A stretch of 64,000 nucleotides of DNA from assembly GCF_031769215.1 (NCBI RefSeq), contig NW_026782179.1, positions 2,108,001-2,172,000 on the forward strand, read 5' to 3'. Below the pieces are notes generated by a model. It searched no databases and had not been told where the DNA came from. It worked only from the letters and a program-made list of their open reading frames with translations. A program made the translations under genes and the position numbers. Within the stretch, counting starts at the first letter, position 1. Each line of letters starts with the position of its first letter. This document shows positions 9,368 through 58,600 of the stretch, piece after piece. The stretch is from Ylistrum balloti (Eukaryota).

Positions 9368-10354
9368 ATGACATCTGACGGCAACCTGACGACACCTGAG
9401 GAAGCAGACGACGGTTACCCTCCTCTCCTTATAGTTTTCATTGTGTTGCAGCAACTTGTTTTCAGCCTTTCCTGTGTTGGCAATGGTATCGTCATATATA
9501 TCTTTATTCGTCACCTCCGTCTCAAATCCTTAACCAACCGTTTTGTCGTGGGACTTGCCGCCGCCGATTTCTTCACGGGACTTTCGGTCGGATCTCAGAT
9601 ATTTTATTTCTTATTTCCAAACCTGAACACTTACAGGGTGGCATGCTTCATCAGGTACCAAATGGTTGCATTTATGACGATGACATCACAGTTGACAGTG
9701 TCATTTACTACATTCGACAGATACATGGCGATTTGTCATCCCCATAGTTACAGTAAAGTGGTAACCAACATTACGGCGAATGTCCTGGTTACGACGCCAT
9801 GGATTTATGCTCTCATTATAACGACGTCATCCTACATTGGACTTGAGCCACGGACAAGCGATTCCTTAAACTGTCTCTATCATCTCATATTCGAACATGG
9901 CGTCTATTTAGCATCGGCATTGACTATCGTCTTTTTTAGTATCGCATCTTTCGTCATGTACATGTGCATTTTACGCATTGCATGGAAATACTACAACAGA
10001 ATACGTCCTTCCATCTCCTCCAGTTCCAATCCCAAAACACGTCAGAAGTCCACGGAGCGGGACGTCCGAAGTGCAAAGGTTATGGGAATCGTAACGACGG
10101 GGTTTACGGTTTGTTGGGCACCATTCACGGCCTATCAGTTCCGATATGGATTGGGGTTTGTTGACCTGACCATGGACGATATCAGTGCTTCCAATTGGCT
10201 TGTATTTCTTGGGATGACCAATAGCCTTGTAAATCCGGTGATATACGCTTGGCAGAGGAAGGATTTCAACAGAGCTTGCAGGAAGCTCTGTGGTCGAAAC
10301 ATTGACGGGAGCAATTCTACGGCCGGCTTCACTTCACATGTCTCAACAACGTAA
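9368..10354 (+). CDS. Intronless rhodopsin-family (class A) GPCR, orphan, 328 aa
   Basis: Seven hydrophobic segments with GN (TM1), LAAAD (TM2), C3.25 and DRY (TM3), W (TM4), CWAP (TM6) and NPVIY (TM7). An acceptor ttttcatattaaag just before the ATG and a donor AAG|GTACGA at 7152/7153 suggest a 5'UTR intron. Confidence 0.95.
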   Translation: MTSDGNLTTPEEADDGYPPLLIVFIVLQQLVFSLSCVGNGIVIYIFIRHLRLKSLTNRFVVGLAAADFFTGLSVGSQIFYFLFPNLNTYRVACFIRYQMVAFMTMTSQLTVSFTTFDRYMAICHPHSYSKVVTNITANVLVTTPWIYALIITTSSYIGLEPRTSDSLNCLYHLIFEHGVYLASALTIVFFSIASFVMYMCILRIAWKYYNRIRPSISSSSNPKTRQKSTERDVRSAKVMGIVTTGFTVCWAPFTAYQFRYGLGFVDLTMDDISASNWLVFLGMTNSLVNPVIYAWQRKDFNRACRKLCGRNIDGSNSTAGFTSHVSTT

Positions 10355-13775: not shown

Positions 13776-14291
13776 CGCACATCACTGTTCTTAATGTTCA
13801 TAACCCTTACTCAAATGGGTCTAAACCAATAAGTGTTAATCATTAATATTATTAGTTTTCCTTTTCTTAACACAACGGTTCTACGTGTATTGCACTAGGG
13901 AGGAAATAGAATATGTGCCGACAGTCAGTGTGTCAGTTTGTCTGCTCATGTGTATATAGATTTAGGCTGGTTATCTATGACAGATTTGTAGTTATACATG
14001 TGCGATCCAATGCCACGCACTATGAACCTTACCTGACTTACAAAACTTGTAATGGGCGGGTGCAGACTTGCTGTTAAAACTAACATATTTAGGAAACCTA
14101 TGCAATACCCGTAGTGATGTTATAAATAGCTACGGGCACTTGGACTTGAGTCAAAACTCCTCCTATCTTATGCTATTGATACAAACATAATACAAAACGC
14201 AAGGGAATCACTGACTACATCGGGCCATCTGGATAATCTCCTATACGACATGCGAGTACCAGGGATTTAGGATTAACACCTCAAACGTGTC

Positions 14292-14334
14292 ATGATGGCC
14301 TCCAACACCCGGATACCAAAGAGGGCTAGATCTG
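14292..14334 (+). CDS. Coding exon 1 of the DUF3715 gene (MMASNTRIPKRARS-G|)
   Basis: ATG ATG at 14292; donor TG|GTAAGT at 14334/14335; phase 1 joins AA at 18201 to give Glu; RIPKR resembles the TASOR QIPRK motif. A GGGCGG GC box lies upstream at about 14054. Confidence 0.75.
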
Positions 14335-17300
14335 GTAAGTATGGACGAGATATTGATGACCTCTGTACAGGCTGAGTTTGAGATTGATGTGGTTGTAAGT
14401 GTTGTCAACCGATCGGAACCCTACTACACCATGTTCATTTCGATGACAACACACAGAGACACCAAAATGAGACGTCTGAATTCGTCTGCTTTTGATTGTC
14501 AGAACCTGAACTGGGTTGATGTCGGCAGAGAAAACTGTATATATATATATATGAAAATGGAAGCATTTAAAAGGAAGGAAAAACAACATTATTTCAATTC
14601 AGTTCAGGACATACGTCAAATTGAAGGAGGAAGCAAAAAGAGGAATTCCCAAATCACGCTATGGAGTGCTATGGAATGTGTTGACTCGATTTTGGCAGAG
14701 TACTGTTAAACTGCGCAGTTATCGGAATGCAAATATGTCGACCAAAAATAGATATACATATGAATTTTACAGTTAATGTCACCGACAAACTAGGTTTAAA
14801 AAGTATCACACATATGTATGTGTAATTGACGTTTAAATCAAACATATAACAAAAACAGTTAACTGTTTGTTTGTTTTTATTCAACTTACACAGTTAATGT
14901 TTAAACAGAATACCTTAAGACATGGTGTATCATTACATGCATAACCTCAAGCTAACGCAGGATGTTATATTTTAGGATTTATATGTTGGGTCAAAATAAT
15001 TGTAAAATGAAAACTGAAAATGAAAAATTAAATCAGAGATCAGTAATTGTACAGTTAATGTTAGAACAATTGTTTATGTGTCCGTGTAAAATTATGATAC
15101 CCTGAATCAAGGTAGTATACATCTAGAAGTAAGCATTATTTCCACAATGTAGAATTTTTAGTGGATTAGCGCTACAACGCTTCGATGTTAGAATTGTTAA
15201 TTCAGTGCGGCGTAGTTACAAAACTGAACTGTATTTATTTTTGCTCAGTGTAGTGCTATGAATTAGCATCCGCCAGTCTCGAAAGACTAAGGTAGTTGCC
15301 CATTAAACTAGCCTGTGCCGGTGCAGTTTTGTGCTGCATGATCTGCTGCAGGTGTTCACATCTGACTTTTCTCTTCTGCTCGGTATGTCTACATATGTTG
15401 CGGTAGGGGACTTCTGCTTTTAAGTCTGCTGGTTCAGTTGAGCATTTCAAATGGTCTCTCTAGCATATTATTTGCTTTTAGTGTCTTGTTAATTCGGTGC
15501 AACTATAGGTCAGTGGCATTAAAGTCTCTGCAGAACCTGCGGAAGTCAATGTCGTTAAGTCTGTGCGGTACTAGAGTGTTGATGGTGTTATATTAATTAA
15601 GTGTAGTAACACGGACTTCAAATAGATGCCTTTATCAAAGTATGTGGTAGTAGTGCAGGTTTGTAAGTTGTGTAATCATTGCCAACTGACATACCATTCC
15701 ATATTTGAATATGAAACGTTTGCAAGTCATATTTTACTACAGAAAGTTAAACGATTAATTATTTTTGAAAAGTTGTTGCTCGATAAATAAATGTTTTATT
15801 TCATTGTGGACCCGCTAGGAAGCTGCTTGTGTTATCATGATATTATACATATACTGTATCTAATAGATATCGAACTTCGCTCACCAGAAAGTACCATGTA
15901 TATCAGTCGAGATAATTCAGTCGGTAAATTAACAGACGGGACTATACATGTTTACACTGATAAGGGTGATAATGTGTGATAAGATTTCTTATCTCAGGAC
16001 AGGCTGGTTTGTGTTCAGTTATAGTATCTTCAGTTATCTAGACATTAAACAAAGGCGTCGATGTAATCTAGCAACAATAATACAACCATGATTATATACA
16101 TACATATATACATAACCAGTTACATTTTGTACTGTTTGTATAATCGTGTTTTTTATTAGGATCGGTCATAAAAATTCATTTTAAAGAACCTTCTGTATAG
16201 AGGGTAAAATTCCACACATCTGCTTCTAAAGTTTTTTAATGATAACTGAAATCAGTTATTGTATCCAATCTTGTAAGATGGCCCTGGTTAAAATGAGTAA
16301 GACAGCACTTGTGACAGGTTATTCTGTGTGTGTTAATACACGGGTTTCAATCGCATTTTTCGAAAATATCATATTTGAATTACTTTATTAGTAACCAATG
16401 AAATCATATCGAGCATGTTCTGTACAGGTAGAAGTCACACTACATACATAAATTGTATATAAAGACGACTCGCTATCCGTTTATGCAATCACATGCGGTA
16501 AAAACTTAAGTATATATAGTTAATGTATATACATTTCTGTAAACCGAACATATATATACATGTTCAAATATATAAGTCTTGTCAGTACGTCAATTTTGCA
16601 TATTGATACGTTAAATAGTAACGCTTGCTGTCATACAAGCCAAAATAACAGAGAAGACATATTTTAAAGGGTTAGGATAAAGTAGTTCAGTTACAAAAGC
16701 GGAAATAACATAGAGAAGACACATTCACAGCTGAAATAGCATAGAGTAGTCGTATTTAGAAACAGCTGAAATAACATAGAGTTGTCACATTTACAAACAG
16801 CTGAAATAACATAGAGTTGTCACATTTACAAACAGCTGAAATAACATAGAGTTGTCACATTTACAAACAGCTGAAATAACAGCCATACTTACAAACAGCT
16901 GAAATAACGTAGAGTTGTCACATTTACAAACAGCTGAAATAACAGTCATATTTACAAACAGCTGAAATAACATATTCACATTTACAAACAGCTGAAATAA
17001 CATAGGGTTGTCACATTTACAAACAGCTGAAATAACATAGAGTTGTCACATTTACAAACAGCTGAAATAACATATTCACATTTACAAACAGCTGAAATAA
17101 CATAGAGTTGTCACATTTACAAACAGCTGAAATAACAGTCACATTTACAAACAGCTGAAATTACATAACATATTCACATTTACAAACAGCTGAAATAACA
17201 GTCACATTTACAAACAGCTGAAATAACGTAGTCACATTTACAAACAGCTGAAATAACATAGAGTGAAATAACAGTCACATTAACAAACAGCTGAAATAAC

Positions 17301-20300
17301 ATAGAGTTGTCACATCTACAAACAGCTGAAATAACATAACGTAGTCACATTTACAAACAGCTGAAATTACATAACATATTCACATTTACAAACAGCTGAA
17401 ATAGCATAACAGTCACATTTACAAACAGCTGAAATAACGTAGTCACATTTACAAACAGCTGAAATAACAGTCACATTTACAAACAGCTGAAATAACATAG
17501 AGTTGTCACATCTACAAACAGCTGAAATAACATAACGTAGTCACATTTACAAACAGCTGAAATAACGTAGTCACATTTACAAACAGCTGAAATAACATGG
17601 AGTTGTCACATCTACAAACAGCTGAAATAACATAACATAGTCACATTTACAAACAGCTTAATTAACATAAAGTAGTCACATCCACAAATGGCTGAAATAA
17701 CTGGATATATATCATATATCATTGAACATATTACATCGTTTGTGTTAACACTGACTACAATTCAAAGCTTGCCAAATTAACAATGACACTAAAAAGGTTA
17801 TGGGTTGTGTTTGTCTATACATATGTTTATTGGAGAATCAATGAGACGATAACATACAAAACAGACAGGTGGATTTGCATAATGACAAAAGCAAATTTAG
17901 TACACACAGACGTCTTATTTGATTAAGAAGTTTGTATTGTCTGAAAGCAGTCGTGAATAAGAGCAATGGCATTATAGGAATTAATTGATGTAGATTTCTT
18001 GTAATTATTAATGTGAAAGTGAAAATATTCGAGAAGAAATATTCTGATAAGTTATCAGATCGAATCTATGCCATCTTCCCCGGTGTACCTTGATAAAATC
18101 CTTGTTTTGTGTGATTGTCTAATGTTCAGTTAGGGTGTCATGCTATGGCAGCAATGTTTCGGGTGATTTCTTTTTTTCTAATTTTGCTATTGTATTTTAG
18201 AACTTATGGAATTTATTCGACTTGATTCTCCTGATGCCAAAGAGATATTGAGAGAGTCTCAGCGAACGAATCTAATTGAGAAAAACACAGAGAGGATATT
18301 CCGTACGATCTCTATGTGTTTAGTCCGGAACACCAACCTGGTCAGGAGATACGAGAGAAGAAGGAAGAGTCTCAGAGACCAGGTAAACAATCAGTAATAT
18401 ATCCTTCCTTCCTACTCTTTTCTTCCATGGCAAAGGCATTGTAAATTTGTAGAGTTTTAGGACTTCGGTGGCATATGTTCTGTCAATTAAATATATAATT
18501 AATTTTCCAGGGTAGAAAACCAAAGGAATTGGAAGATAGACTTCTATTTGCTGAAGAATCTTGGCCAGAGATTCAGAAGGTGTGCAGATTGGGACCAAAT
18601 TGTGAAAAGACACGAAATGTTCTAGGCGACAGTCAGTTCGGTCTTCACCTCAACAGAAACTATGACATCCTTTTGAGGTACACGGCGTGTACGAAAGCTG
18701 AAGGGATCAGGTTCTTACTGGTCTTTAAGGTAAGAATGTACTTCTTTGTTGTTGACATTGACATTATTACGTATAATTCCGTGTACCTACTTTTGGATAT
18801 TTTTGTGCGTGCTCTTTGAATAAAAATGAATTCATTTGATCTAACAATATGCTGGAAACTTTTGCCAATATTATTTGTTTTCTTGTAAAGGCTATGTTCG
18901 GAAAAGTGAAATCTGTCACACCAAATCTAACTGATCAGTATCAGCGCAGCATCGAACCAACTCCAAACTACGATACACACATCTCCGTCATTAAACCAGA
19001 CGCCGATATGGGAATATGTGATGCACAAGACCACAACTTAGTAAGTACTGTTTAATATAAACAAAAATATATACAACTAATAGAAATTAAAGGTAAAGTG
19101 AAGTTAGTATGTTTAAGACTGTGTTACATTAACATTCGCCTCTAGATTACATTTTATGCTCATAAACAACCTAGGTATTTCTGTGATGAGTTGATATATT
19201 AATGTAACTTAATCAAAGTGTAATATGTATTCTCCAGAAATAAAACGGAGTGACGTATCTGTTATTTGCTACAGATTATGCTAGAAACCAAAGTATATAT
19301 GTCCCAGCATTGCAAGCATATTATCAACTAATCGCTTAGTTCCTTTAAGATGAGAAGAAACACCTTAGTAGTGAACTTCGCTAAACTGAACGCCATATGA
19401 TAATATTCAAAATCGGGTTAATACTGCAAATATATTAGAAAACTATTACTCTGTCATAGCCTTGTTATTAGAGAAAAGAAAATCATGAAATCAGATTTTT
19501 CGGGTTTTTTATTTGTAGGCGTACCTGTATGAATATGACGAGGAGACGACACTGCCAAGCATGTCGCCATCGCAAATACTGCCTTTTGCTGTAATTAGCC
19601 TTCAACGAACAGAAGAGAAAATCATTGGTCCTCTGCGGACACCGTGGTCAAAGTTGAGGAAAAAAAGACAGTTGTCTTCTTTCAATCATACTTTTAAACA
19701 ACAATTGAGCGAGGAAGCACACACTACACCTATTTCAAACATAGGCGTTTCCCTAAATACTGATTTGTCATCAACTGCACCGAAGGGAAAAGTTGCCGAC
19801 ATTTCAGTAGACAACATTAACGCCTGTTCCAAACGAGAAATAACAAATTCAAACTCGTTGGATAACGTTAGTACATTGGCATCTAACAAAAACGCCAAAC
19901 GGAAATCACCAAAATCATCCCGTGGGTCTACACAGCGATCAGTCATGAAAGTATCTGGGGATCGGCCCAAATCAGTAGAGCAAGAAAAGACGGATAAAGG
20001 TCCATTATATGCAGATGTGGATTGTGCGCAACAGGATGAATCAGATTTACAATACACGGAATATTTCTGTGATCCACCCCTTGAACAGAAGTCCTCGGAT
20101 GACACAAATATGTATCTGGAAATTGAAAATTCGTCTCCCACCCAGCATGCTTCTCCCCCTCCTACAGAACCTTCATCAGATAAGTCGCTTATTATTCATC
20201 GATTAAAAGAATTAGAACAAGAGATTCAGACGAAACAAAGAAAACTTCACGAGCTCAGACAAAGTCGACATTTATCGGCGAGGTCTAGAGATTCTATAAC

Positions 20301-23300
20301 ATCAGATGAGGACCTATCAGTAGAGGATTTCGTTACCGAGCAAATCGCAATGGCATCAAAAATGATGGAGCTAAGTGAGGAGAGTGAACAGCCATTAGAC
20401 CTTAGCAAAGCTAGCACTATTCAATTTGATAATAAATTTAAAGATGAGAGTGTATCGACAACTGACAGGAATGTCTCTATTTTTACTCTAGATGAAAGAC
20501 TACAACAAAATGCACATATTGATGGAAACCATGAAAACGAAGAAATGTTGAACATACAGTCAAATAACGACTGTTCAGGAATTACGTTAGCGGGCAATAT
20601 AAACAAATTGCATCTGAAAATTAACGTCGATTCAGATCAGAATAATTGTGGTGAACTGAATCATGACATCCCTACACCAACACTGGACGAGCCGCAAGAC
20701 ATGTGTTGGATAGATACTGCTCAAACGGTCGTAGTTTCAGCAGGTCCTCTGAATAAATGTCGAAACAACTGGGATACCAGGGGATCTACTGTAGGAAAAG
20801 AAACTGATACAGAAGTAAGGAGGGAAATAAAACGTAATGATTCAGTTGATAGCACAAGCAGGTCTCAAACAGATGTAAGCATGCCATCTTCTTCAAAGAA
20901 GTGCTCAGATTTCTATGAAAATTATATAAAGAAAAAGAAGCGAACTATGGCCGATCATTTCAAACCAAAAGAAATATCAAATGTATCGGCAGGTGCTCTC
21001 CAACATTCAGACCAATGTAATATGATTGTGATGGGACTTGGAGATACTGAAAATTCGCATTGGCACCATACGTCAGCTGTCAAACCAAATGTGTCAGAAA
21101 CGGTTGATCAACAACCAATGGAGGAAAATGAGCAATCAACCAACAATGTTTCTCCACAGGCGGAGCTTTGTTATTATAACAACAACTGTAAGGTTCTTAA
21201 CTGGAGAGATCCAATACTTAATAAAGTTGCAACATTGGAGAGTGAATCCACGAATAGTAACAAGTTTGTACCTCAAGCAAATGGTGAAGACACAACACAG
21301 TCAAGCAAGGTAGATATTGAATGTATTGCAGAAGAATGCTATGAAGATGGTCATAAAAAACATGAAGACATACCTGATCATGCAGGCCCAATACAATATG
21401 AGTCAGATAAGGTAAAATGCTCGAAAATACAACGTGATTCTGACATTGAAGATAAGCATTCTGTTCTGGCTTCTCCGGTATGTGATAATAACACATCTCC
21501 GTCGTGTGACGAAACATCTGAGAATGTTTTGAATGAGATGCAAGTCGACCCAGAATCGAACAATTGTCAGTCAAATGCTAGGCACAATGTAGATAAAACT
21601 TTATCTACAGATGTTAAAAAAGCCTTGCAGGACCTCGGAGATGCAATCAAGGAGATTCAGAAAAAAGTCATAGAAACTGACGATAGCAAGAGTTCATCGA
21701 TCATCAGCTCTCCGATTGAGGTGGAAGTGGAGATGGACACATCATTGAACACAATGTTTATTCAAGAAAATCAAGGTCAGCAAGCAATTTCTACAATTGT
21801 AACCGATCGCTTAGTTCGTCAAAACAGAGATAACGCTACCACAAAAGTACCTACAGTGATAGAAGTCAGTTGTGTGAACATGCAGAAGGATGTCTCGGAA
21901 AACGGAGCAATGGATACAGATTTAAGAAATGAATGCACTTCAATGTTAGACGTCAATGACGCAGTCATAACGCCTATGAAAAGTGTTGATAGCAATACCA
22001 AGTCTGAAAACCTTGAAGATAATCGGCCCATACAGTTTGAACTTAAGGCAAAAGACAAGGTTGAGGACTTAAATTGCGATGATTTCACACCGAAAAACCA
22101 AGGTTTCTCGTCTTTTTTGCAAGATGCAGGTTGTCAATCTGGTTTTGAAGCACTCTCTAAGGTCATTTTTCGTGATGGTGAAGCTATCAGAGGTAAAAAT
22201 CAGCAGAAAGCAGATAATCCTCCAATTGTAGTGAAAACGGAAGCTCCAGATTCGTATTTTGACGAGAAATCAATGCAAATGGATAGCATAGAGGATGACT
22301 CAGTGCGGAAAGTATATATCACAAATGCTTCTCGGGAAAAGGAAAGAACCGCACATACAATATCAAACGAATTCATCTTAAGTCAAGAAATTGAAAAGAC
22401 ATTAAGTGAAATAAAAAATGATACAAACATTTCACACCAATTATATTCACCTGAAAATAGCAGTTTTCAGGAAAAAGAGGCCAAAACTATCAAACTTGAA
22501 AATATTCAATTATCACCATCTCATCGACCACGCAGCAGTGGCAGGAGCAGAAGTCGGAGCAAAAGTACAACTGTTTCGATAGCTTCTGATTTACAGAGGA
22601 AATCACATTACCGGCCACGCGAAGTGTCCCCAATTCGGGATCCTTCATTTGTCCCATTCCATGAAAAAGGTAAAATCCTCAAAAAATATTTCAAAAACAA
22701 ACGAAAACGATTTGGATTGAAATGGGTTGGTAGAAAGCGATCACCAAGCGGCTTTAGGGTCCGCGCTGTTCACAAAGCTAAACTAACATTATACAAAAAC
22801 TTTGTCTCACAAGGACCATCAGTGAAAAAACGGACGGATACAAGACGAGTCGTAAAAGTAGAAAAGAGAGATTCTGATGCCAATGATCGAAACTCATGGA
22901 AATCAAAATATTCCCATAAAAAAGCTTTTTTCAGGAATTCCAGCAAAGACGTTGCTGAATCTAAGTTCCAAGAAAGAGGACTGCGTTCTTGCACAAACAG
23001 ACAGACGGTAAGACCCTGGCATAGAACTGGAACAATTCCGGACAATTTGATCATAGATAGGCATGGTATGATCATTTCCACGACGTCGCAAAGCAATCGG
23101 TCCGAGTCACGATTTCGTAATAACTCAAGGTTTGGCAGAAGAGTGTGCGATGAATCGGTCTTAAACAAACATCAAAGTACCAGAAGGAGTTTCCTGGAGC
23201 ACAGTGAAAGTACAAATCGTAGTGATCTTCCAAGTTCTGAAGCTACGTTATCAAAAGCAATGACCTCTCTGCTCAAAAGGGTCTTATTTGATGGACCAAG

Positions 23301-24051
23301 AAATGACGGAAGTACTGAAGACAAAATGGCAGATATGATATTCGAAATGATGAAAAGGGTTACTAGAAAAGATAATGAACAATCATCAACGCTTGGCATT
23401 GATCATATAAGCCGCGAGGAGACACGAGGATTTGAGGAATTGCCTGTAGACTATTATCCAGAACTCTCGTCGGCTGTTCGATCTGATCGGTCGAGAGATC
23501 GATCGAGGAGCAAAGAAAGCTACTCGGGCAATTGGGAACGCAGAGAGGTATATATTGACAGTAAGTCGTCGATCAGCTGTGATAGCCGGGGCTATACTGA
23601 CCATAGACGTAGTTATATGCAAACAAGTGATGAACGGAAGAATCACGAAGAACGGTATTACAACAGGACTGAAAATTGGTACGATAGGACCGACAGAAAT
23701 GAGAATCCACGTTTCGGGGACAGGTTCGATGACCGCGGATGGGATAGGGGTCGTGAAAGATGGGATAACACAACGGATAACTTCAATACATTCAGCCGAA
23801 GTAATTTAAGTGAAAGTCATGACAAGCGACCATTTCAAAGGGATGACGGAAGATACTCGTCTAGATCATTTAACTTAAATGCATCTCATTTAAGGACGGG
23901 AAAGGATTTTTCATCTGGAAAAGGTTTCCGCAATTCAGATTTTCACAACCAATCCTATAGTAGAAAGTTTGAAAAATATGCATCTGAAAGAAAGTATCAT
24001 CATAGAAACCGGAACAGAAAGAGTAGCAGAAATGCTAAAGAAATGCTTTGA
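14292..24051 (+). CDS. TASOR/TEX15-family DUF3715 pseudo-PARP protein, about 1708 aa; join(14292..14334,18201..18382,18511..18729,18891..19040,19519..24051)
   Basis: All four introns are GT..AG with matching phases (1,0,0,0). Spliced N-terminus MMASNTRIPKRARSELMEFIRLDSPDAKEILRESQ...MCLVRNTNLVRRYERRRKSLRDQGRKPKELEDRLLF...VLGDSQFGLHLNRNYDIL...FLLVFKAMFGKVKSV...IEPTPNYDTHIS...AYLYEY...PSQILPFAVISL. This aligns collinearly with the TASOR DUF3715 as I recall it (FQIPRK...ACLVHNELLEKEFTEKRRELKFDGRLDKEL...ILGSPSMGVYLSRYADLL...VVIFKIMKGKIKS...LDPTPKHECHVS...YYFYEY...PRHVCPYAVVSF). Confidence 0.88.
16690..17700. repeat. Minisatellite in intron 1 of the DUF3715 gene: constant core cacatttacaaacagctgaaataac plus short variable linkers (35-bp main unit)
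   Basis: Roughly 27-30 core copies; linkers include atagagttgt, agt, atatt and gtagt. Confidence 0.95.
18201..19040 (+). CDS. Exons 2-4 encoding the DUF3715 pseudo-PARP core (18201-18382, 18511-18729, 18891-19040)
   Basis: Acceptors tattttag, ttttccag and cttgtaaag; donors CAG|GTAAAC, AAG|GTAAGA and TTA|GTAAGT; exon lengths 182/219/150 keep the frame. Confidence 0.9.
19519..24051 (+). CDS. Giant (4533-nt) terminal coding exon of the DUF3715 gene: domain end plus about 1480 aa of low-complexity tail
   Basis: Acceptor ttttttatttgtag|GCG in phase 0, in frame with ORF 19561..24051; uninterrupted to TGA at 24049-24051. Confidence 0.9.
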   Translation, partial: AYLYEYDEETTLPSMSPSQILPFAVISLQRTEEKIIGPLRTPWSKLRKKRQLSSFNHTFKQQLSEEAHTTPISNIGVSLNTDLSSTAPKGKVADISVDNINACSKREITNSNSLDNVSTLASNKNAKRKSPKSSRGSTQRSVMKVSGDRPKSVEQEKTDKGPLYADVDCAQQDESDLQYTEYFCDPPLEQKSSDDTNMYLEIENSSPTQHASPPPTEPSSDKSLIIHRLKELEQEIQTKQRKLHELRQSRHLSARSRDSITSDEDLSVEDFVTEQIAMASKMMELSEESEQPLDLSKASTIQFDNKFKDESVSTTDRNVSIFTLDERLQQNAHIDGNHENEEMLNIQSNNDCSGITLAGNINKLHLKINVDSDQNNCGELNHDIPTPTLDEPQDMCWIDTAQTVVVSAGPLNKCRNNWDTRGSTVGKETDTEVRREIKRNDSVDSTSRSQTDVSMPSSSKKCSDFYENYIKKKKRTMADHFKPKEISNVSAGALQHSDQCNMIVMGLGDTENSHWHHTSAVKPNVSETVDQQPMEENEQSTNNVSPQAELCYYNNNCKVLNWRDPILNKVATLESESTNSNKFVPQANGEDTTQSSKVDIECIAEECYEDGHKKHEDIPDHAGPIQYESDKVKCSKIQRDSDIEDKHSVLASPVCDNNTSPSCDETSENVLNEMQVDPESNNCQSNARHNVDKTLSTDVKKALQDLGDAIKEIQKKVIETDDSKSSSIISSPIEVEVEMDTSLNTMFIQENQGQQAISTIVTDRLVRQNRDNATTKVPTVIEVSCVNMQKDVSENGAMDTDLRNECTSMLDVNDAVITPMKSVDSNTKSENLEDNRPIQFELKAKDKVEDLNCDDFTPKNQGFSSFLQDAGCQSGFEALSKVIFRDGEAIRGKNQQKADNPPIVVKTEAPDSYFDEKSMQMDSIEDDSVRKVYITNASREKERTAHTISNEFILSQEIEKTLSEIKNDTNISHQLYSPENSSFQEKEAKTIKLENIQLSPSHRPRSSGRSRSRSKSTTVSIASDLQRKSHYRPREVSPIRDPSFVPFHEKGKILKKYFKNKRKRFGLKWVGRKRSPSGFRVRAVHKAKLTLYKNFVSQGPSVKKRTDTRRVVKVEKRDSDANDRNSWKSKYSHKKAFFRNSSKDVAESKFQERGLRSCTNRQTVRPWHRTGTIPDNLIIDRHGMIISTTSQSNRSESRFRNNSRFGRRVCDESVLNKHQSTRRSFLEHSESTNRSDLPSSEATLSKAMTSLLKRVLFDGPRNDGSTEDKMADMIFEMMKRVTRKDNEQSSTLGIDHISREETRGFEELPVDYYPELSSAVRSDRSRDRSRSKESYSGNWERREVYIDSKSSISCDSRGYTDHRRSYMQTSDERKNHEERYYNRTENWYDRTDRNENPRFGDRFDDRGWDRGRERWDNTTDNFNTFSRSNLSESHDKRPFQRDDGRYSSRSFNLNASHLRTGKDFSSGKGFRNSDFHNQSYSRKFEKYASERKYHHRNRNRKSSRNAKEML

Positions 24052-34500: not shown

Positions 34501-34850
34501 TTACCTGTGTAGGTCAGTGTGTCTGAAGGAGAGTATACTTTGCCAAAATGTCTTGTTTTGATTTGTTTTATTATGAATGAACTAAATGTCAAAGATGTGA
34601 TTTGCTTTGGTATCAATTTTCTGAAGTTTGTGTAGATAATGGTGCTTAATGCATTTCTCCTCTCCTCCTTCAGTTTTGGCGATGAAGAAGTAAAGTATCT
34701 GAATCTAAAAGAAATCCATAGAGAAAATGTTAAAAATTTTCAGGGTTTTTTCTTGTCTGTGATGTTTAGTTTGAAAGCTTCAAATATAGTACACATTGAT
34801 ATGAGAATTATTTTTGCTTTCTGCTTTCAGGATTGTCCCCCACTGGAACC

Positions 34851-37800
34851 ATGACTCATCCACCTAAGAAGAAGCTTTCATTGTCAGAAAGGTTTGGGAC
34901 CATTGGACCTTTAGCTGACTATCGCAATAAGGCTCAGAAAAATTCAGAAATGGTCAGCAAGCTACAGCTGCAAATTACAGAGGTAGTGAGGAAACGCTCG
35001 GAGGGGTATGACAGAGAGTCACAAGCAAAAATGATAAGTAAGGAAATTTCTGATGTGCAACAAAGGTTTGATGATGCTCCTGTTGCCTGTCAAAAGTTCA
35101 CACCATTTAAAGTTGAACTTAGAGTAAACATTGATAAAAAGCATGCTGAGCCCCAAAAGGGCAGTAAGATGAATGAAAAGGCATATTACAATGAAAATTT
35201 GGATACTCCCTTTAAAAGTCAACCGAATAAGACAAGTCCAAGCAAGGGGAATGAGAGTATAGCCAGCCATGTCTCTGTATTGGAACACCATACTCAAAAT
35301 GATTCAGTGTCAAATGGCACTGCAGCAATTATGGCTGTCACAGAAAATGAATCTAAGATGAAGATCAATTTGCAGAAATCCTTAATCCCATGTACAAAGA
35401 CTGAAAAAGATGTGAATATCCAGCCTTTACCTGAATTAAACCAGGACGCTTTATCATCTGAAACACATCAACCTTGTGACGTGAAAGTAAACTCAAATAA
35501 CGCTTGGCTTCAAGGAAATTCTACACACCATTCACCACAAAACGCAGCTGTCAATCTGATATCAGTTGAGGAACAGCAAAAACAGAACCAAAATAGAACC
35601 CAGTGCATCAGAAAGACTCCTCAGTTAGGGAAAGACTGCTGTGATGTAGGAAACTATACAGAACCCAAAAATATGACAAAAGAACCATTTAACAAAGCAA
35701 TCAGTGCAAAACCCATGCTTAGCTTCAATAATGGATATGGTGGAATGAACATGGCAAATCCAAATTCAATGAGAATTCCTCAGTCAGGGAAAGAGAGCTG
35801 TAATGAAGGGAACTATACTGAACCCAAAAATATGGCAAAAGAACCATTTAACAAAGCAATCGGTGCAAAACCCATGCCTAGTTTCAATAATGGGTATGTT
35901 GGAATGAACATTGCAAGTCCAAATTCAATGAGAAGGCAAGGTTCCAATACCAGTCCAAATTACAGCAAGGGGAAATATGCAAAGAAGACAAGTCCAATTT
36001 TCAAGCATGGAAAAGGTTCTAGTACATGTCCAAACTTTAACAAGGGAAAAGATTCTAATTACAAATCAATTAAAAAATACAATAAGGGTGAAAAATCAAA
36101 GACAAGTCCAAATTTTAACCAGGGGAAAGGTTTCAAGGCAGGTCCAAACTTTGACAAGGGGAAAGGATCAAAGACAAGTCCAAATCTTAACCAGGGAAAA
36201 GGTTTCAAGGCAGGTCCAAACTTTAACAAGGGGAAAGGATCAAAGACAAGTCCAAATTTTAACCAGGGGAAAGGTTTCAACTCAGGTCCAAACTTTGACA
36301 AGGGGAAAGGATCAAAGACCAGTCCAAATTTCAACAAAGGAAAAGGTTATAATTCAACTGCATCATTCAACAATGACAAAAGTAACAATACTAGTCCAAT
36401 TTTCAACAGTGAAAAAAGGTCTAATACAAGTCCAAAATTTGACCAAGGGTTATTCTTGCAAAGCAGGCAAAATGTCCGTGAAAGACAAGACTGTAAAACA
36501 AGTCTATTTTACAGCTGGAAACCAGATTCTCAGACTGCTCCAAACTTCATTAAGGGACAAGACTTCAAGACCAGTCCTAACTACAGCCATATCCACAGTA
36601 TTGAGACCAATACAAATGTGAGTATATGTTCTGAGTCAAGTCCTAATCTGAACAAAGGACAAGGATTTCAGACTAGTTTAAACTTTGATAAGAAAACAGG
36701 ATTCCAAACTAGCCCAAATTTCAAACAGAATACTTTAAATTCAATTGGATGCAACACTTTCGGACTAAGTAATCAACTGCCTGGTGGGACTAATTTTCGG
36801 CAATATTATGGAGCAAATACTTTCTCCAGTGATGACCCTTGCACAGTTTATGACACTCGGGATAAATTCTACAATTATCAGAGAGGAAACCAGTTTTCAA
36901 AAGGTCAACAACAAAGAGACAATTTCCACAACGAACCTGGATTTGGAGGACAGCCAATTAATCAGCAAAGTTCATTTTCATCTATTCCTGCAAATCAAAG
37001 TATTGTCAACAAGGCAAGACCAAGTAATCAGGACAAAATTTCACAACCTTTTGTCCACTCTCCAAGTAAACAGTTTGACATAACAGGTGGTTTTGGGAAA
37101 AGACATGCATCTCCTGTTGCTTCCAATCAGTACATGGCACCGACAAAGAAAAGGATGTTGACCACTGATCCTTTGTATAAAGATGTTCCTTCTGTTCAAA
37201 ACAGACTTCCATATGTGCAAGATAAGTTACCCAACACACCTATACAGGAAAATCCTTGCGGTGCTGTCTCCCATGGTAAAGTATATAATGGAAATGGCAA
37301 TTTCCCTTATGGATATTACCCTGGTCATGTTGCAAATACTTCATTTCAAACACCAGTAATGAGTAATTATGGACTGGCTCTCCATGGCCCTTTCACACCA
37401 AAGACTCGAAATGCATCATCCCAGAATTGTTCATTAACCCTTGATAGTACTGATAGCAAATGTTACCATTTGAATGACCCTCAGGATTTGTCTCGAACAA
37501 AGCAGTACCTTTTCAACAAGATGTTTGATAAAAGTGATGCAGGAGATGGTACGAAAATCACTGAGGATACTGGAATTCCTGGAATGAATATGAAGCCTAC
37601 TGGCGATGTTGTTAAACCTACTGGATTTTATAAGGAAATACTAAAGGAAAGTAGAGAAACAAGTCAAAATGAGAAGGAAGAAACTGAGCTTGTTTCCACT
37701 CTGCTAACACAATGCCAGGCAATGGCTCAAAAGGATGATGACAAACAAGCATTGCATACAATTTTTAACATTATCCACCAAGAAATGGGACATCAATCTT

Positions 37801-39341
37801 TTTTACCTCCCTCTGAGAAGAATAAGATTTCAAGCACTGCTCATGTACCATCCCAAACAAGAAGCACTTCTGAGGTATCTTGGGGCAGTGATGAACCTAA
37901 ATTTAGTCCTGCCTCTTCAAGTCCAGATGCTGCTTCTAGACAGAATGGAAATAATCGGTTTGAGGGAAGAACACTTCTCAAAGGAGGAGTAAAGCCACGT
38001 CATATACCCAAAACTTTGATTAACAAACAAGATGATGATCCACCAAAGGATCCCAGATCTGTAAAGGATCTTAAAACAAAATCGGCATTAGCAAGAAAAA
38101 TGAAGGATCTGCCTTTGCCTCCATTTTTCATTGAATTTGTTGCAACCAAGAAATATGACAAGAAAAAAAGTATTGAAACCAAAGTAAATGAAATGTCGAG
38201 ACAAAATACTGAGAGTGTAAGTGAAGTCAATTTGGCAAATCCATCCACTGGCTTTGAAACCAAAGATACTAAAATTGGGATGGGAAACATTGACGGCTTG
38301 AATCCAGGATCAAATACAAGTGTACAGTATCAGCAAACAGCAAATGAGAAGCCAATTGTAGAAACCAAAACAGATGACTGTGGTCTTGATCCTGTGGAAA
38401 TGGGAAAATCTGATTCGATATCACCCATCTTACCACGTATTACTGTCAGACTAGAGAAAGATGGGATTGTAACTGATAACAATTTGAACACGGAACAGAG
38501 TGATAATATTTGTTCTCGAGACCCTCGATTGAGAGCCACAAGCATTTCAAAGAAAAGAGAGGATAAAGCAATAGTTGATTTACCAGTGCTTAAGTATGAG
38601 GAATACACAGTTGAAAAACGTAAATCTTCAGATACTGTTTGTAAGAAGGTTGTTAAAGATTCTGAGCCAATACAATTTCAGGATTACAAAGGATGTACTG
38701 GGATGAAAGGAAACAAAGATTGCCTTCAGTCTCAACATAAAAACAGCCCACTTTCTTGTGGAGGTACTAATGGAAGGGAGACAAACATTGCCAGAAGTGC
38801 TTTTGAGAGAAATTTGCATCACTCAGATTCCAAGAATCCGAAAGAAGAGTTCTCTAGAAAGTTAACTACACAGCAACATAGGTATTCCATGACTGGCAAC
38901 TCTCCTCCAAAAAGATACAGTCGATTTTCCAGTGAGCGTTCGTTGAGTAGATCTAGAAGTAGTTCTAGGAGCAGAGATGAAGAATGGACAGGAAAGGAAG
39001 TCTCTGTTAGAAGGACAAACAGAATTGACTACTCTTGTGCAAATATTTACTTGTCACATTCCTATAAAAGGGACACTGTTGTGTACAACTGTGACAAACA
39101 ATGTGAGAGTTATGAAAACCAATTCCTAGAGAGGAATGAGCATGACAGGTGGAACAGAGAGAGACATTCTATGTCACCTGGTACTTGCAGGTATTTGAAA
39201 AGGAGAGATTTAGAGAGGAAGAGCTCTCCTCCATCTTCTGGGAATAGAAATGTATCCAGAAATAGGTACCAAGGTAGAAGGAATCGGAACTATTCTGAAG
39301 GCAGTGATTATCCAGAATTGTGCTTTTCTCCCTTGCGATAA
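34851..39341 (+). CDS. Orphan single-coding-exon protein, 1496 aa, largely disordered, probably nuclear and RNA-related
   Basis: Uninterrupted 4.5-kb ORF in AT-rich DNA. Acceptor ttttgctttctgctttcag|GA at 34830/34831, then accATG at 34851. N-terminal PPKKKLSLSERF and C-terminal RSLSRSRSSSRSRDEE. Confidence 0.85.
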   Translation: MTHPPKKKLSLSERFGTIGPLADYRNKAQKNSEMVSKLQLQITEVVRKRSEGYDRESQAKMISKEISDVQQRFDDAPVACQKFTPFKVELRVNIDKKHAEPQKGSKMNEKAYYNENLDTPFKSQPNKTSPSKGNESIASHVSVLEHHTQNDSVSNGTAAIMAVTENESKMKINLQKSLIPCTKTEKDVNIQPLPELNQDALSSETHQPCDVKVNSNNAWLQGNSTHHSPQNAAVNLISVEEQQKQNQNRTQCIRKTPQLGKDCCDVGNYTEPKNMTKEPFNKAISAKPMLSFNNGYGGMNMANPNSMRIPQSGKESCNEGNYTEPKNMAKEPFNKAIGAKPMPSFNNGYVGMNIASPNSMRRQGSNTSPNYSKGKYAKKTSPIFKHGKGSSTCPNFNKGKDSNYKSIKKYNKGEKSKTSPNFNQGKGFKAGPNFDKGKGSKTSPNLNQGKGFKAGPNFNKGKGSKTSPNFNQGKGFNSGPNFDKGKGSKTSPNFNKGKGYNSTASFNNDKSNNTSPIFNSEKRSNTSPKFDQGLFLQSRQNVRERQDCKTSLFYSWKPDSQTAPNFIKGQDFKTSPNYSHIHSIETNTNVSICSESSPNLNKGQGFQTSLNFDKKTGFQTSPNFKQNTLNSIGCNTFGLSNQLPGGTNFRQYYGANTFSSDDPCTVYDTRDKFYNYQRGNQFSKGQQQRDNFHNEPGFGGQPINQQSSFSSIPANQSIVNKARPSNQDKISQPFVHSPSKQFDITGGFGKRHASPVASNQYMAPTKKRMLTTDPLYKDVPSVQNRLPYVQDKLPNTPIQENPCGAVSHGKVYNGNGNFPYGYYPGHVANTSFQTPVMSNYGLALHGPFTPKTRNASSQNCSLTLDSTDSKCYHLNDPQDLSRTKQYLFNKMFDKSDAGDGTKITEDTGIPGMNMKPTGDVVKPTGFYKEILKESRETSQNEKEETELVSTLLTQCQAMAQKDDDKQALHTIFNIIHQEMGHQSFLPPSEKNKISSTAHVPSQTRSTSEVSWGSDEPKFSPASSSPDAASRQNGNNRFEGRTLLKGGVKPRHIPKTLINKQDDDPPKDPRSVKDLKTKSALARKMKDLPLPPFFIEFVATKKYDKKKSIETKVNEMSRQNTESVSEVNLANPSTGFETKDTKIGMGNIDGLNPGSNTSVQYQQTANEKPIVETKTDDCGLDPVEMGKSDSISPILPRITVRLEKDGIVTDNNLNTEQSDNICSRDPRLRATSISKKREDKAIVDLPVLKYEEYTVEKRKSSDTVCKKVVKDSEPIQFQDYKGCTGMKGNKDCLQSQHKNSPLSCGGTNGRETNIARSAFERNLHHSDSKNPKEEFSRKLTTQQHRYSMTGNSPPKRYSRFSSERSLSRSRSSSRSRDEEWTGKEVSVRRTNRIDYSCANIYLSHSYKRDTVVYNCDKQCESYENQFLERNEHDRWNRERHSMSPGTCRYLKRRDLERKSSPPSSGNRNVSRNRYQGRRNRNYSEGSDYPELCFSPLR
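35619..35935 (+). repeat. Coding tandem duplication of 159 bp (53 aa)
   Basis: PQLGKDCCDVGNYTEPKNMTKEPFNKAISAKPM... starts at 35619; PQSGKESCNEGNYTEPKNMAKEPFNKAIGAKPM... starts at 35778. Confidence 0.95.
35938..36725 (+). repeat. Coding 36-bp (12-aa) repeat T/A-S/G-P-N-F-N/D-K/Q-G-K-G-x-K, with a 72-bp higher-order core
   Basis: aagacaagtcca at 36099, 36171 and 36243, and aagaccagtcca at 36315; degenerate copies flank both sides. Confidence 0.95.
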
Positions 39342-55600: not shown

Positions 55601-58600
55601 GTAACAAGTAAGTTACCACATTATAGTAACAAATAAGTTAACACATTATAGTAACAAGTAAGTTACCACAGTATAGTAACAAGTAAGTTACCACAATAGA
55701 GTAGCAAGTAAATTATCACATTATAGTAACAAGTTTACTATCATATTATAGTAACAAGTAAGTTACCACAATATAGTAACAAGTAAGTTACCACAATAGA
55801 GTAGCAAGTAAATTATCACATTATAGTAACAAGTTTACTATCATATTATAGTAACAAGTAAGTTACCACATTATAGTTACACGTAAACTACCACAATATA
55901 GTAACAAGTAAACTTCCAGACTGTAGTAACAAGTCAATTACCAAACTGTAGTAACAAGTAAAATACAAAATTGTTGTAATTAGTCAACTACTAACTTATG
56001 ATAACCTGAATAAAGTAAATGAGCAGAGTTAGTGTTAATGTTTAGGGTACATATATATCTTTATTTGTTTTTTTAAGGTATTTTTAAAATAATATTCTTT
56101 CATTTCCAGGTCCAAGCTGGTCGGCCACCAGGAAACAAAGATGTCATGTATGATGATATGGGCAATGTTCTGGCGGTGATCAAACTAAATCCTGAAAAAC
56201 TACCATCTCACAGGTATAACTTGTCATAATATAGACATCTCACAGGTATAACTTGTCATAATATAGACATCTCACAGGTATAACTTGTCATAATATAGAT
56301 ATCACACAGGTATAACTTGTCATAATATAGATATCACACAGGTATAACTTGTCATAATATAGACATCTCATAGGTATAACTTGTCATAATATAGACATCT
56401 CACAGGTATAACTTGTCATAATATAGACATCTCATAGGTATAACTTGTCATAATATAGATATCACAAAGGTATAACTTGTCATAATATGGATATCACACA
56501 GGTATAACTTGTCATAATATAGACATCTCACAGGTATAACTTGTCATAATATAGACATCTCACAGGTATAACTTGTCATAATATAGACATCTCACAGGTA
56601 TAACTTGTCATAATATAGACATCTCACAGGTATAACTTGTCATAATATAGATATCACACAGGTATAACTTGTCATAATATAGACATCACACAGGTATAAC
56701 TTGTCATAATATAGACATCTCACAGGTATAACTTGTCATAATATAGATATCACACAGGTATAACTTGTCATAATATAGATATCTCACAGGTATAACTTGT
56801 CATAATATAGACATCTCACAGGTATAACTTGTCATAATATAGACATCTCACAGGTATAACTTGTCATAATATAGACATCTCACAGGAATAACTTGTCATA
56901 ACATGACATCTCACAGGGATGACTTGTCATAACATGACATCTCATGGGTATAACTACATAGATTTAAAAACAGTCATTACATGTTATGTGGACTTATAAG
57001 TAACTCGCATGGCATGCTGTCTCATGGTCATTAATTCTGTGAAGAGTCATGTTAATTTTTTGTACTCACTGTATTTCTCCCTGTCCTTTTGTCTGCCTGC
57101 AAACACCTAATTACAAAGTAAATGCCTTTTGTTAAAATTTTGTGTCCAAAGTGTAAGTTTTCTTGCATTTAATATAGGAAAATGATACTTTTGTTTGTAT
57201 TTTGATCGACTCTGATGTATTTGTATGCTGATCAGTTGTTTTGTGTTCTTTAGAGTGAAGGTGAAATACCAAGTGGTAGATCCTGCTGTGGAGGCTGCCC
57301 AGGCTAGACTAGAGGCCATGAGGCATGGTCGGTACATGAGTAGAGCAATCCAGCGTAGACTTAAACGCAACAAAGTCGAGGAAATCAGGCCAGATGAAGG
57401 TAACTGTACAAGATGTGCTGGCGAGTGCCATATTTTAAAGAGGAGGATCTTGAATGAGCTTCCATTTCATGGGGTATTTATGAAAATTTTAAAATGGTTT
57501 CAATTTAGTGAGCTGTAGCGAACTAGATGGAAACCAATTGAGAAAATTCATAAATATTATATGATTATATAGCTCATTTGATATTCTTTTTATCATATGA
57601 CACTGTAGACACCATTACCAGCAAAAATCCAGAATGACCAATCCCAAAATTTAGTCCTGCATGCTTTTGTCGCTATTCAGTCAGGATGGTATTAAACGTA
57701 TTGTTTGTATTGACGTCACAATCAAAGTTGTTCAGGCCTGTCAGAATGTCACAGTGTTGTTACACATCAAAGTTAATGTGATGGTGTTATACAATGATAT
57801 AACACAGTAGTCGTATGATAAAAAAATGAAGACAAAACACAACATGATAGTATTATACATAACAGTATTTGGATAATATATCAAAAACCTCACTGTACAG
57901 ATGAGAAATTTTTCCATTTTTATAATATGTACACTAATTATTTTTCTTAAATCGCATGATAACTTTGAAACATTTTGTATCCAGTTTCACATGTCATTAG
58001 AAAATATATTTCTCAGAAAATTATTCAGTACTTGAAATATTATTTTAGATGTCATACAGAATGAACAATTTTGACTTATCATTCATTATAATTTGTGACA
58101 TTCTGATTGGACTGGACTTTGATTGTGACATCATAATAGAATCAGCTGTATGACATCATGATGTCTAGTGAGAAGCCAGGACACAATTTTTAGATTGGTT
58201 ATCAACCTGTTTTAGAATATTTACCAAATGTAGAATTCTAAAGCAGGAATCTAGGGGTCTTTTATTGATTCACTTGTTTTGTCTTTTTTTCTGCCATGAA
58301 AACCATCTTGGTGTAGGAAAAAGTCTTCAGGTGTGGACATACCAAGAATTGCTAGCAATTGAAATGTGTCAAAATCCCATCAAAGGAAATTATGGTGCTG
58401 TCTCTATACTCCCAACCTGCCACAGGCTAAACTACCATTCTGGTTCTTCTGCTAGTCAAGCAGTTCCCTTCGCATCAATAAGGGACAGCATTCCAGCAAG
58501 GCCTTGTGCAGAACTGGAAGATGAAGAACAGAAGGAATGTCTAATACACACACATAACAATTCAAATACTACACACACTCAAAATAGTTGTGATTTACAA

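Follow-up and report, generated by a model that had tools for sequence, protein, structure and literature searches.

The 64,000-nucleotide stretch of DNA analysed here (the window) comes from the scallop Ylistrum balloti (contig NW_026782179.1, positions 2,108,001 to 2,172,000), and all coordinates below are counted from its first base. The window contains a five-exon gene on the forward strand whose product, a protein of 1707 amino acids (aa), appears to join an N-terminal pseudo-PARP domain of the DUF3715 family to a long tail encoded by a single giant exon. The gene structure was obtained by an exhaustive search of GT-AG junctions, which gave one solution per junction with matching phases, and the joined product is identical to the NCBI “uncharacterized protein LOC132551652” of Ylistrum balloti (P0001, 1707 aa). 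The features of the gene are the following:

14059-14128 (+): probable 5' untranslated region (UTR) segment upstream of the start codon, with 84% identity to bases 1-70 of a contig from a related scallop (L001, described below)
14292/14295-14334 (+): exon 1, coding, ending in phase 1 with an exon-final G before the donor gtaagt
14335-18200 (+): intron 1, 3.9 kb, which holds a 35-bp minisatellite at 16677-17701
18201-18382 (+): exon 2, aa 14-74, encoding the helices and strands at the N-terminal end of the pseudo-PARP, colinear with bases 291-475 of L001
18511-18729 (+): exon 3, aa 75-147, the DUF3715 core, in which A88 and H120 stand where PARPs have His and Tyr, respectively
18891-19040 (+): exon 4, aa 148-197, DUF3715 continued, containing the family-invariant H177
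19519-24051 (+): exon 5, the giant exon, aa 198-1707 and stop codon, whose first 30 codons complete the pseudo-PARP domain and which contains Y203
18201-19608 (+): coding span of the predicted pseudo-PARP (RDTS/DUF3715) domain, aa ~15-227, split by three introns (from AlphaFold2, Foldseek and Pfam)

An earlier reading made from the letters alone (hereafter the sequence-only reading) had proposed that four small exons with consistent phases join the giant exon, and the unique GT-AG junctions bear this out. It was also right that the list of open reading frames (ORFs) starts the long frame at an internal Met, which lies at 19561, 14 codons inside exon 5. The gene is, however, not hidden as that reading had it, since the RefSeq model has the same exons, the DUF3715 family entry PF12509 is precomputed on the record, and UniProt names bivalve relatives “TASOR pseudo-PARP domain-containing protein”. 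The start of exon 1 is placed by NCBI at the ATG at 14295, and the earlier start at 14292 is the adjacent in-frame ATG directly upstream. The minisatellite in intron 1 comprises ~31 copies with 81% matches, and it accounts for short repetitive minus-strand ORFs in the ORF list.

The intactness of the gene was assessed by comparison with its relatives. A Logan contig from run SRR19746227 of a related scallop (L001, 5857 nt) holds one uninterrupted ORF (P0003, 1758 aa) and is colinear with the five exons of the window, with breaks (18199-18383, 18507-18730, 18888-19036 and 19519 onward) that correspond to the proposed junctions. Among three scallops, invariant residues make up 74-88% of residues 1-250, compared with 8-50% in 50-residue bins of the tail. 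Against L001, the domain has a ratio of nonsynonymous to synonymous substitution (dN/dS, Nei-Gojobori method) of ~0.03, with dN 0.08, and the tail one of 0.32; these are rough values with dS near saturation, and the ratio stays below 1 throughout. The reading frame of 5.1 kb is intact, and orthologues are present in at least 10 bivalve genera. This is an intact five-exon protein-coding gene under purifying selection, and neither a chance ORF nor a pseudogene. A further homologue (P0004) was met on a contig of 8770 nt from JGI metagenome 3300005037 (L002), which is animal (bivalve) DNA despite its “metagenome” label and which contains the third, fourth and giant exons, with much shorter introns.

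The identity of the N-terminal region is supported by both sequence profiles and predicted structure. The spliced protein matches the Pfam DUF3715 profile with 55.8 bits over aa 71-219 (profile positions 2-150) against a gathering cut-off of 28.5 bits, and the Pecten orthologue scores 58.1 bits; single exons remain below the threshold at 13.5 and 19.9 bits. A phmmer search of PDB sequences returned the TASOR pseudo-PARP 6TL1 as its only match (E 1.5e-15). The AlphaFold2 model of residues 1-240, built on a 56-sequence alignment, has a pLDDT of 91 and a pTM of 0.87, and its best Foldseek match is again 6TL1 (E 1.2e-18, TM 0.76/0.86, root-mean-square deviation 2.6 Å, 23% identity), ahead of all active PARPs, with PARP10, tankyrases, PARP1 and ZAP ranking after it. 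The top three structure matches in AFDB Swiss-Prot are mouse, human and frog TASOR. The DUF3715 pseudo-PARP identity put forward in the sequence-only reading therefore stands up to profile search, structure prediction and structure comparison.

To map the active site, residue roles were taken from Douse et al. 2020 (PMC7532188) and transferred through the HMMER alignment. The PARP His position (L184 in TASOR) is occupied by Ala88 and the PARP Tyr position (Y217 in TASOR) by His120, while Y203 aligns with TASOR Y305 in the β8-β9 loop and is Y or F in 10 of the 11 members of the bivalve clade to which the gene is assigned below. The nearest structure, 6TL1, is an NAD-incompetent TASOR domain. 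Judging from the model and the alignment, residues ~15-227 are predicted to fold as a PARP of the DUF3715/RDTS type in which the His and Tyr that bind NAD are missing, hence the term pseudo-PARP. We considered His120 as a signature of the bivalve clade, in which it is fixed, but discarded it as such, as the same residue is met in TASOR-like proteins from scallop, sea urchin and limpet and in others besides.

The remaining 1480 residues present a different picture. A Pfam search of the 1510-residue giant exon gave no SPOC, TASOR alpha/beta, PIN, TEX15 or other match at E values up to 10. With the same library, PIN_TASOR and TASOR alpha/beta are detected in a shark TASOR and a nemertean protein, SPOC is detected in a protein of an acorn worm, and turtle TEX15 gives 310 bits for the TEX15 domain (PF15326). 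Iterated profiles started from the tails of TASOR, TASOR-like, TEX15, c3 (a molluscan group introduced below) and amphioxus proteins recruited no member of the bivalve clade; their yield was 36-40 relatives for the shark TASOR and nemertean TASOR-like tails and 36 proteins for the TEX15 tail. The claims of the sequence-only reading that SPOC and other TASOR C-terminal domains are missing, and that the layout, a domain at the N-terminus and then a giant exon, is not that of TASOR, both agree with these searches. The tail is rich in Ser, Asp, Lys and Glu, with basic clusters, and its first part (residues 231-400) is Ser/Lys/Asp-rich and poorly conserved. It looks mostly disordered, with a few conserved helical motifs, and the following elements can be distinguished:

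20185-20268 (+): heptad-like helical block, aa 420-447, conserved, also in ark clam and mussel orthologues
20392-20406 (+): PLDLS motif, aa 489-493, conserved only in scallops and P0004
22612-22806 (+): basic block, aa 1229-1293, conserved, predicted to form two isolated helices
23236-23379 (+): two-helix motif towards the C-terminus, aa 1437-1484, whose key positions do not vary among orthologues from scallop, mussel, oyster and pearl oyster
23428-24048 (+): low-complexity C-terminus, aa 1501-1707, with R 16%, S 15%, D 10% and Y 6%

The PLDLS motif resembles the CtBP-binding PxDLS motif and is a candidate only; confined as it is to scallops and P0004, it was rejected as a corepressor motif of the whole family. 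Nor was a folded domain retained for the conserved part near the C-terminus, AlphaFold2 having returned isolated helices with a pLDDT of 52 and a pTM of 0.16 for aa 1215-1490, a weak negative given the 7-row alignment. A simple pattern search of the tail found no SUMO-interaction-type motif. The ESM Atlas look-alikes of the tail are SR-type nuclear proteins (SRRM2, SON and NKAP) at 0.77, which is below a meaningful score and probably reflects composition.

Relatives of the domain had to be collected by an exhaustive HMMER search (256 relatives), as a word-indexed search with the N-terminal 240 aa returned scallops only. The tails of these relatives fall into three main clusters, namely TASOR/TASOR-like (43), vertebrate TEX15 (33) and the molluscan “c3” group (13). 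In a maximum likelihood (ML) tree of 56 DUF3715 domains, the TASOR-like (98/98), TEX15 (92/89) and c3 (100/99) clades are all recovered, as is a bivalve-only clade (clade A, 100/99) that comprises scallops, Tegillarca, Saccostrea, Pinctada, Mytilus, Sinanodonta, Mactra and Mercenaria, with a branching that tracks bivalve relationships. LOC132551652 falls in clade A, outside the other three. Approximately unbiased (AU) tests of how clade A relates to them reject none of the groupings A+TEX15 (p 0.18), A+TASOR-like (p 0.45) and A+c3 (p 0.13). Canonical TASOR-like genes are found separately in scallops (P0093 of Mizuhopecten, 2690 aa, with DUF3715 and SPOC, and the “protein TASOR-like” of Argopecten), so the gene studied here is not the scallop TASOR orthologue, and Mytilus edulis carries all three lineages (clade A, c3 and TASOR-like). 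As judged from these comparisons, the gene is best assigned to an orthologous group that spans autobranch bivalves and is distinct from TASOR-like, vertebrate TEX15 and c3. The label “TASOR/TEX15-type” given by the sequence-only reading therefore survives at the level of the domain family but not beyond it, as the gene sits in a bivalve clade of its own, outside TASOR-like (98/98) and TEX15, and has no TEX15 domain.

Two observations on names and positions of orthologues may be added. The Mytilus edulis clade-A gene and its c3 paralogue (L005 and L006) lie on the same chromosome (OY782964.1), ~14 Mb apart. The RefSeq name of the Mytilus clade-A orthologue, “myosin-2 heavy chain-like”, looks like a misnomer arising from low complexity.

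Intron positions provide a further character, and they were determined exactly for five genes, namely the clade-A genes of the scallop and Mytilus, the Mytilus c3 gene, the Mizuhopecten TASOR-like gene and, as the one vertebrate gene, turtle TEX15 (isoform X1). Two introns are common to all five genes with identical phase, one of phase 1 near the N-terminus and one of phase 0 that lies a single residue ahead of the YxYEY strand, and this sharing of both position and phase supports common descent of the four lineages. A phase-0 intron after the “FK” strand is common to clade A, c3 and TEX15 and is offset by three codons in the TASOR-like gene; c3 and the TASOR-like gene alone have a phase-1 intron in the middle of the domain. 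In clade A and c3 nothing separates the giant exon from the YxYEY intron, while in turtle TEX15 one further intron stands between them. The pattern as a whole leans slightly to TEX15 and c3, and is not decisive.

It is useful to set the scallop protein beside the systems it resembles. With TASOR and TASOR-like proteins it shares the N-terminal pseudo-PARP fold, a degenerate active site, the Tyr of the β8-β9 loop and two introns of the same phase, but it differs from them in having no detectable SPOC, DomI, alpha/beta or PIN; the TASOR-like gene, moreover, is split into many small exons and has its post-“FK” intron three codons away. TEX15 is alike in that its N-terminal DUF3715 domain leads into a very long and largely unstructured region that a giant exon encodes, with the same three intron positions in the domain, no mid-domain intron, and pairwise domain scores above those of vertebrate TASOR. 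It differs in its one or two TEX15 domains, which the scallop protein lacks, in its length (2500-3200 aa vs. 1707 aa), in the extra turtle intron between domain and giant exon, and in forming a clade to which the scallop protein does not belong. The c3 proteins (Aplysia, Solemya, Mytilus P0014 and Dreissena; 2400-4500 aa) are also DUF3715-only by Pfam, have a giant exon that begins at the same phase-0 intron before the YxYEY strand, and co-occur with clade A in Mytilus edulis; they nevertheless form a separate clade (100/99) with unrelated tails, the PARP-position Tyr kept in 8 of 9 members, and an extra mid-domain intron. The cnidarian “truncated Tex15 homologs” (bioRxiv 10.64898/2026.09.07.749791) are similar by description, with DUF3715 as the sole recognisable domain. 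Finally, the inactive PARPs (ZAP/PARP13 and plant RCD1/SRO) share a PARP fold that has lost its NAD-binding residues, and SRO proteins and ZAP are among the fold matches, although at a TM of about 0.55-0.6 with 12-15% identity and in other domain contexts.

Taking these results together, the best explanation overall seems to be that the locus holds an intact SPOC-less DUF3715 pseudo-PARP gene whose product is most likely a nuclear scaffold in repression, a reading that we favour with moderate confidence. In such a mechanism the scallop pseudo-PARP would be the effector module in nuclear co-transcriptional or chromatin repression, the motifs of the disordered tail may recruit lineage-specific partners, and the protein as a whole would act as a nuclear scaffold, as its mammalian homologues suggest. 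The repressive role is proposed because mammalian DUF3715 domains are both interchangeable and required, and because the Tyr critical in TASOR is kept (Y203). The DUF3715 domains of mammalian TASOR and TEX15 are required for RNA-directed transposon silencing, and the human and zebrafish TEX15 domains can substitute for that of TASOR (PMC10578480). In TASOR, the pseudo-PARP is dispensable for assembly and localisation of the HUSH complex and is needed for H3K9me3 deposition and LINE-1 repression, and mutation of Y305 abolishes HUSH silencing (PMC7532188). A role specifically in transposon silencing is one that we infer from homology to the mammalian proteins only.

Several considerations weigh against this reading. 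The tail appears to contain none of the modules that link TASOR to MPP8 and Periphilin or that define TEX15, and therefore a silencing role is not readable from the partner-binding parts of the protein. The pseudo-PARP call covers the His and Tyr positions of the PARP His-Tyr-Glu triad, and the change from Tyr to His at 120 is also seen in other lineages and so carries little weight. The L001 contig is probably a spliced transcript, judging by its lack of introns.

Among the alternatives, the gene could be the bivalve counterpart of TEX15, either as a co-orthologue or as an analogue, that is, a germline factor acting with nuclear PIWI in piRNA-directed silencing whose vertebrate TEX15 domains were lost or never gained. 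We regard this as possible but unlikely. The domain is matched more strongly by vertebrate TEX15 (~E 5e-20) than by vertebrate TASOR (~E 7e-11), in both genes a giant exon comes after the N-terminal domain, and they share the phase-0 post-“FK” intron and the lack of the mid-domain intron of TASOR-like and c3, although the former is also present in c3 and intron loss can occur in parallel. The submitters of the Mactra orthologue named it “Testis expressed sequence 15”, but neither Pfam nor the iterated profiles find a TEX15 domain in the scallop protein. The AU test does not reject A+TEX15, yet the groupings with TASOR-like and c3 are equally not rejected. TEX15 is treated as vertebrate-specific by Schöpp et al. 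2023 (PMC10578480), and our literature search found no paper pairing TEX15 with bivalves. The suggestion that the dead PARP fold is put to use elsewhere, in RNA binding for antiviral or RNA-decay control (as in ZAP/PARP13), as a nuclear scaffold for RNA processing, or in meiotic DNA repair, is one to which we give only a small chance. It draws on the weak binding of single-stranded RNA by the TASOR domain, for which the authors themselves draw a parallel with ZAP (PMC7532188), on the annotation of an amphioxus DUF3715 protein for DNA repair, and on the SR-protein-like features of the tail (the Atlas look-alikes and the R/S/D/Y-rich end). The Atlas score, as stated above, is too low to be meaningful, the functionally critical Tyr is conserved, and the DUF3715 functions tested so far all lie in silencing, where even distant domains are interchangeable (PMC10578480).

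The remaining alternatives are far weaker. That the protein is the scallop TASOR orthologue and thus a core component of HUSH is very improbable: TASOR is indeed the best match among solved structures, but the scallop protein is excluded from the TASOR-like clade (98/98), the searches that find SPOC, alpha/beta and PIN in the shark, nemertean and acorn-worm proteins do not find them here, and a separate DUF3715-SPOC gene exists in Mizuhopecten and Argopecten, with both types present in Mytilus edulis. Long low-complexity ORFs are sometimes spurious, and the fold is that of PARP enzymes, so that an error of annotation, a pseudogene or an enzyme with ADP-ribosyltransferase activity might each be imagined. 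These are scarcely credible in view of the intact 5.1-kb frame, the spread of orthologues, the dN/dS below 1 and the intron-free contig of the relative, and, for an active enzyme, of the Ala and His found in place of the PARP His and Tyr.

The preferred reading, an SPOC-less pseudo-PARP protein acting in nuclear repression, can be extended in a direction that we put forward as a rather doubtful conjecture. Bivalves may have retained three ancient DUF3715 lineages (TASOR-like, c3 and clade A), and the SPOC-less clade A could be an invertebrate counterpart of TEX15 that links recognition of nascent transposon RNA by PIWI and piRNAs to silencing through chromatin or DNA methylation. If true, the split between HUSH-type and piRNA-type pseudo-PARP silencers would predate vertebrates, and bivalves would offer an invertebrate system for both silencer types.

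The finding itself is modest, as RefSeq already lists the gene and invertebrate DUF3715 proteins without SPOC have been published. The distribution of DUF3715 across Metazoa, the invertebrate TASOR-like proteins (defined as DUF3715 followed by SPOC-DomI) and other DUF3715 architectures, including ones without SPOC-DomI, were described by Schöpp et al. 2023 (PMC10578480). DUF3715-only proteins in cnidarians have been reported in a 2026 preprint (bioRxiv 10.64898/2026.09.07.749791). What is new here is that a bivalve-wide SPOC-less orthogroup is delimited beside two other lineages, that intron positions are compared, and that conserved motifs are identified in the tail. Both mammalian systems of RNA-directed transposon silencing depend on a DUF3715/RDTS domain, and a short, well-folding and constrained invertebrate version on a different tail is a natural comparison for the function of the domain. 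Studied alongside its TASOR-like and c3 paralogues, which these animals also carry, it can help to separate the function of the domain from the contributions of its partners. The gene is also a candidate for taking part in the little-known nuclear control of transposons in bivalves.

No second set of DUF3715 exons was found within the window. A second long ORF at 34833-39341 (+), of 1502 codons and 10.8 kb downstream, has no Pfam domain above threshold; it was considered as a paralogue of the pseudo-PARP protein and rejected, its best BLASTP match to that protein being at E 0.04 in low-complexity sequence. It contains a repeated unit of the type “GKG.K..PNFN”. Upstream of the gene, an intronless ORF at 9368-10354 (+), of 328 aa, matches rhodopsin-family seven-transmembrane receptors (Pfam 7tm_1, E 3.7e-35). 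Towards the end of the window, an ORF of 244 aa at 58265-58999 (+) has no match, and the adjoining ORF at 59052-59690 (+), of 212 aa, matches GDSL-like lipase (E 1.4e-9) and the OSK domain (E 3.2e-7); it could come from a retrotransposon, as its SGNH-esterase ORF, or be a host gene.

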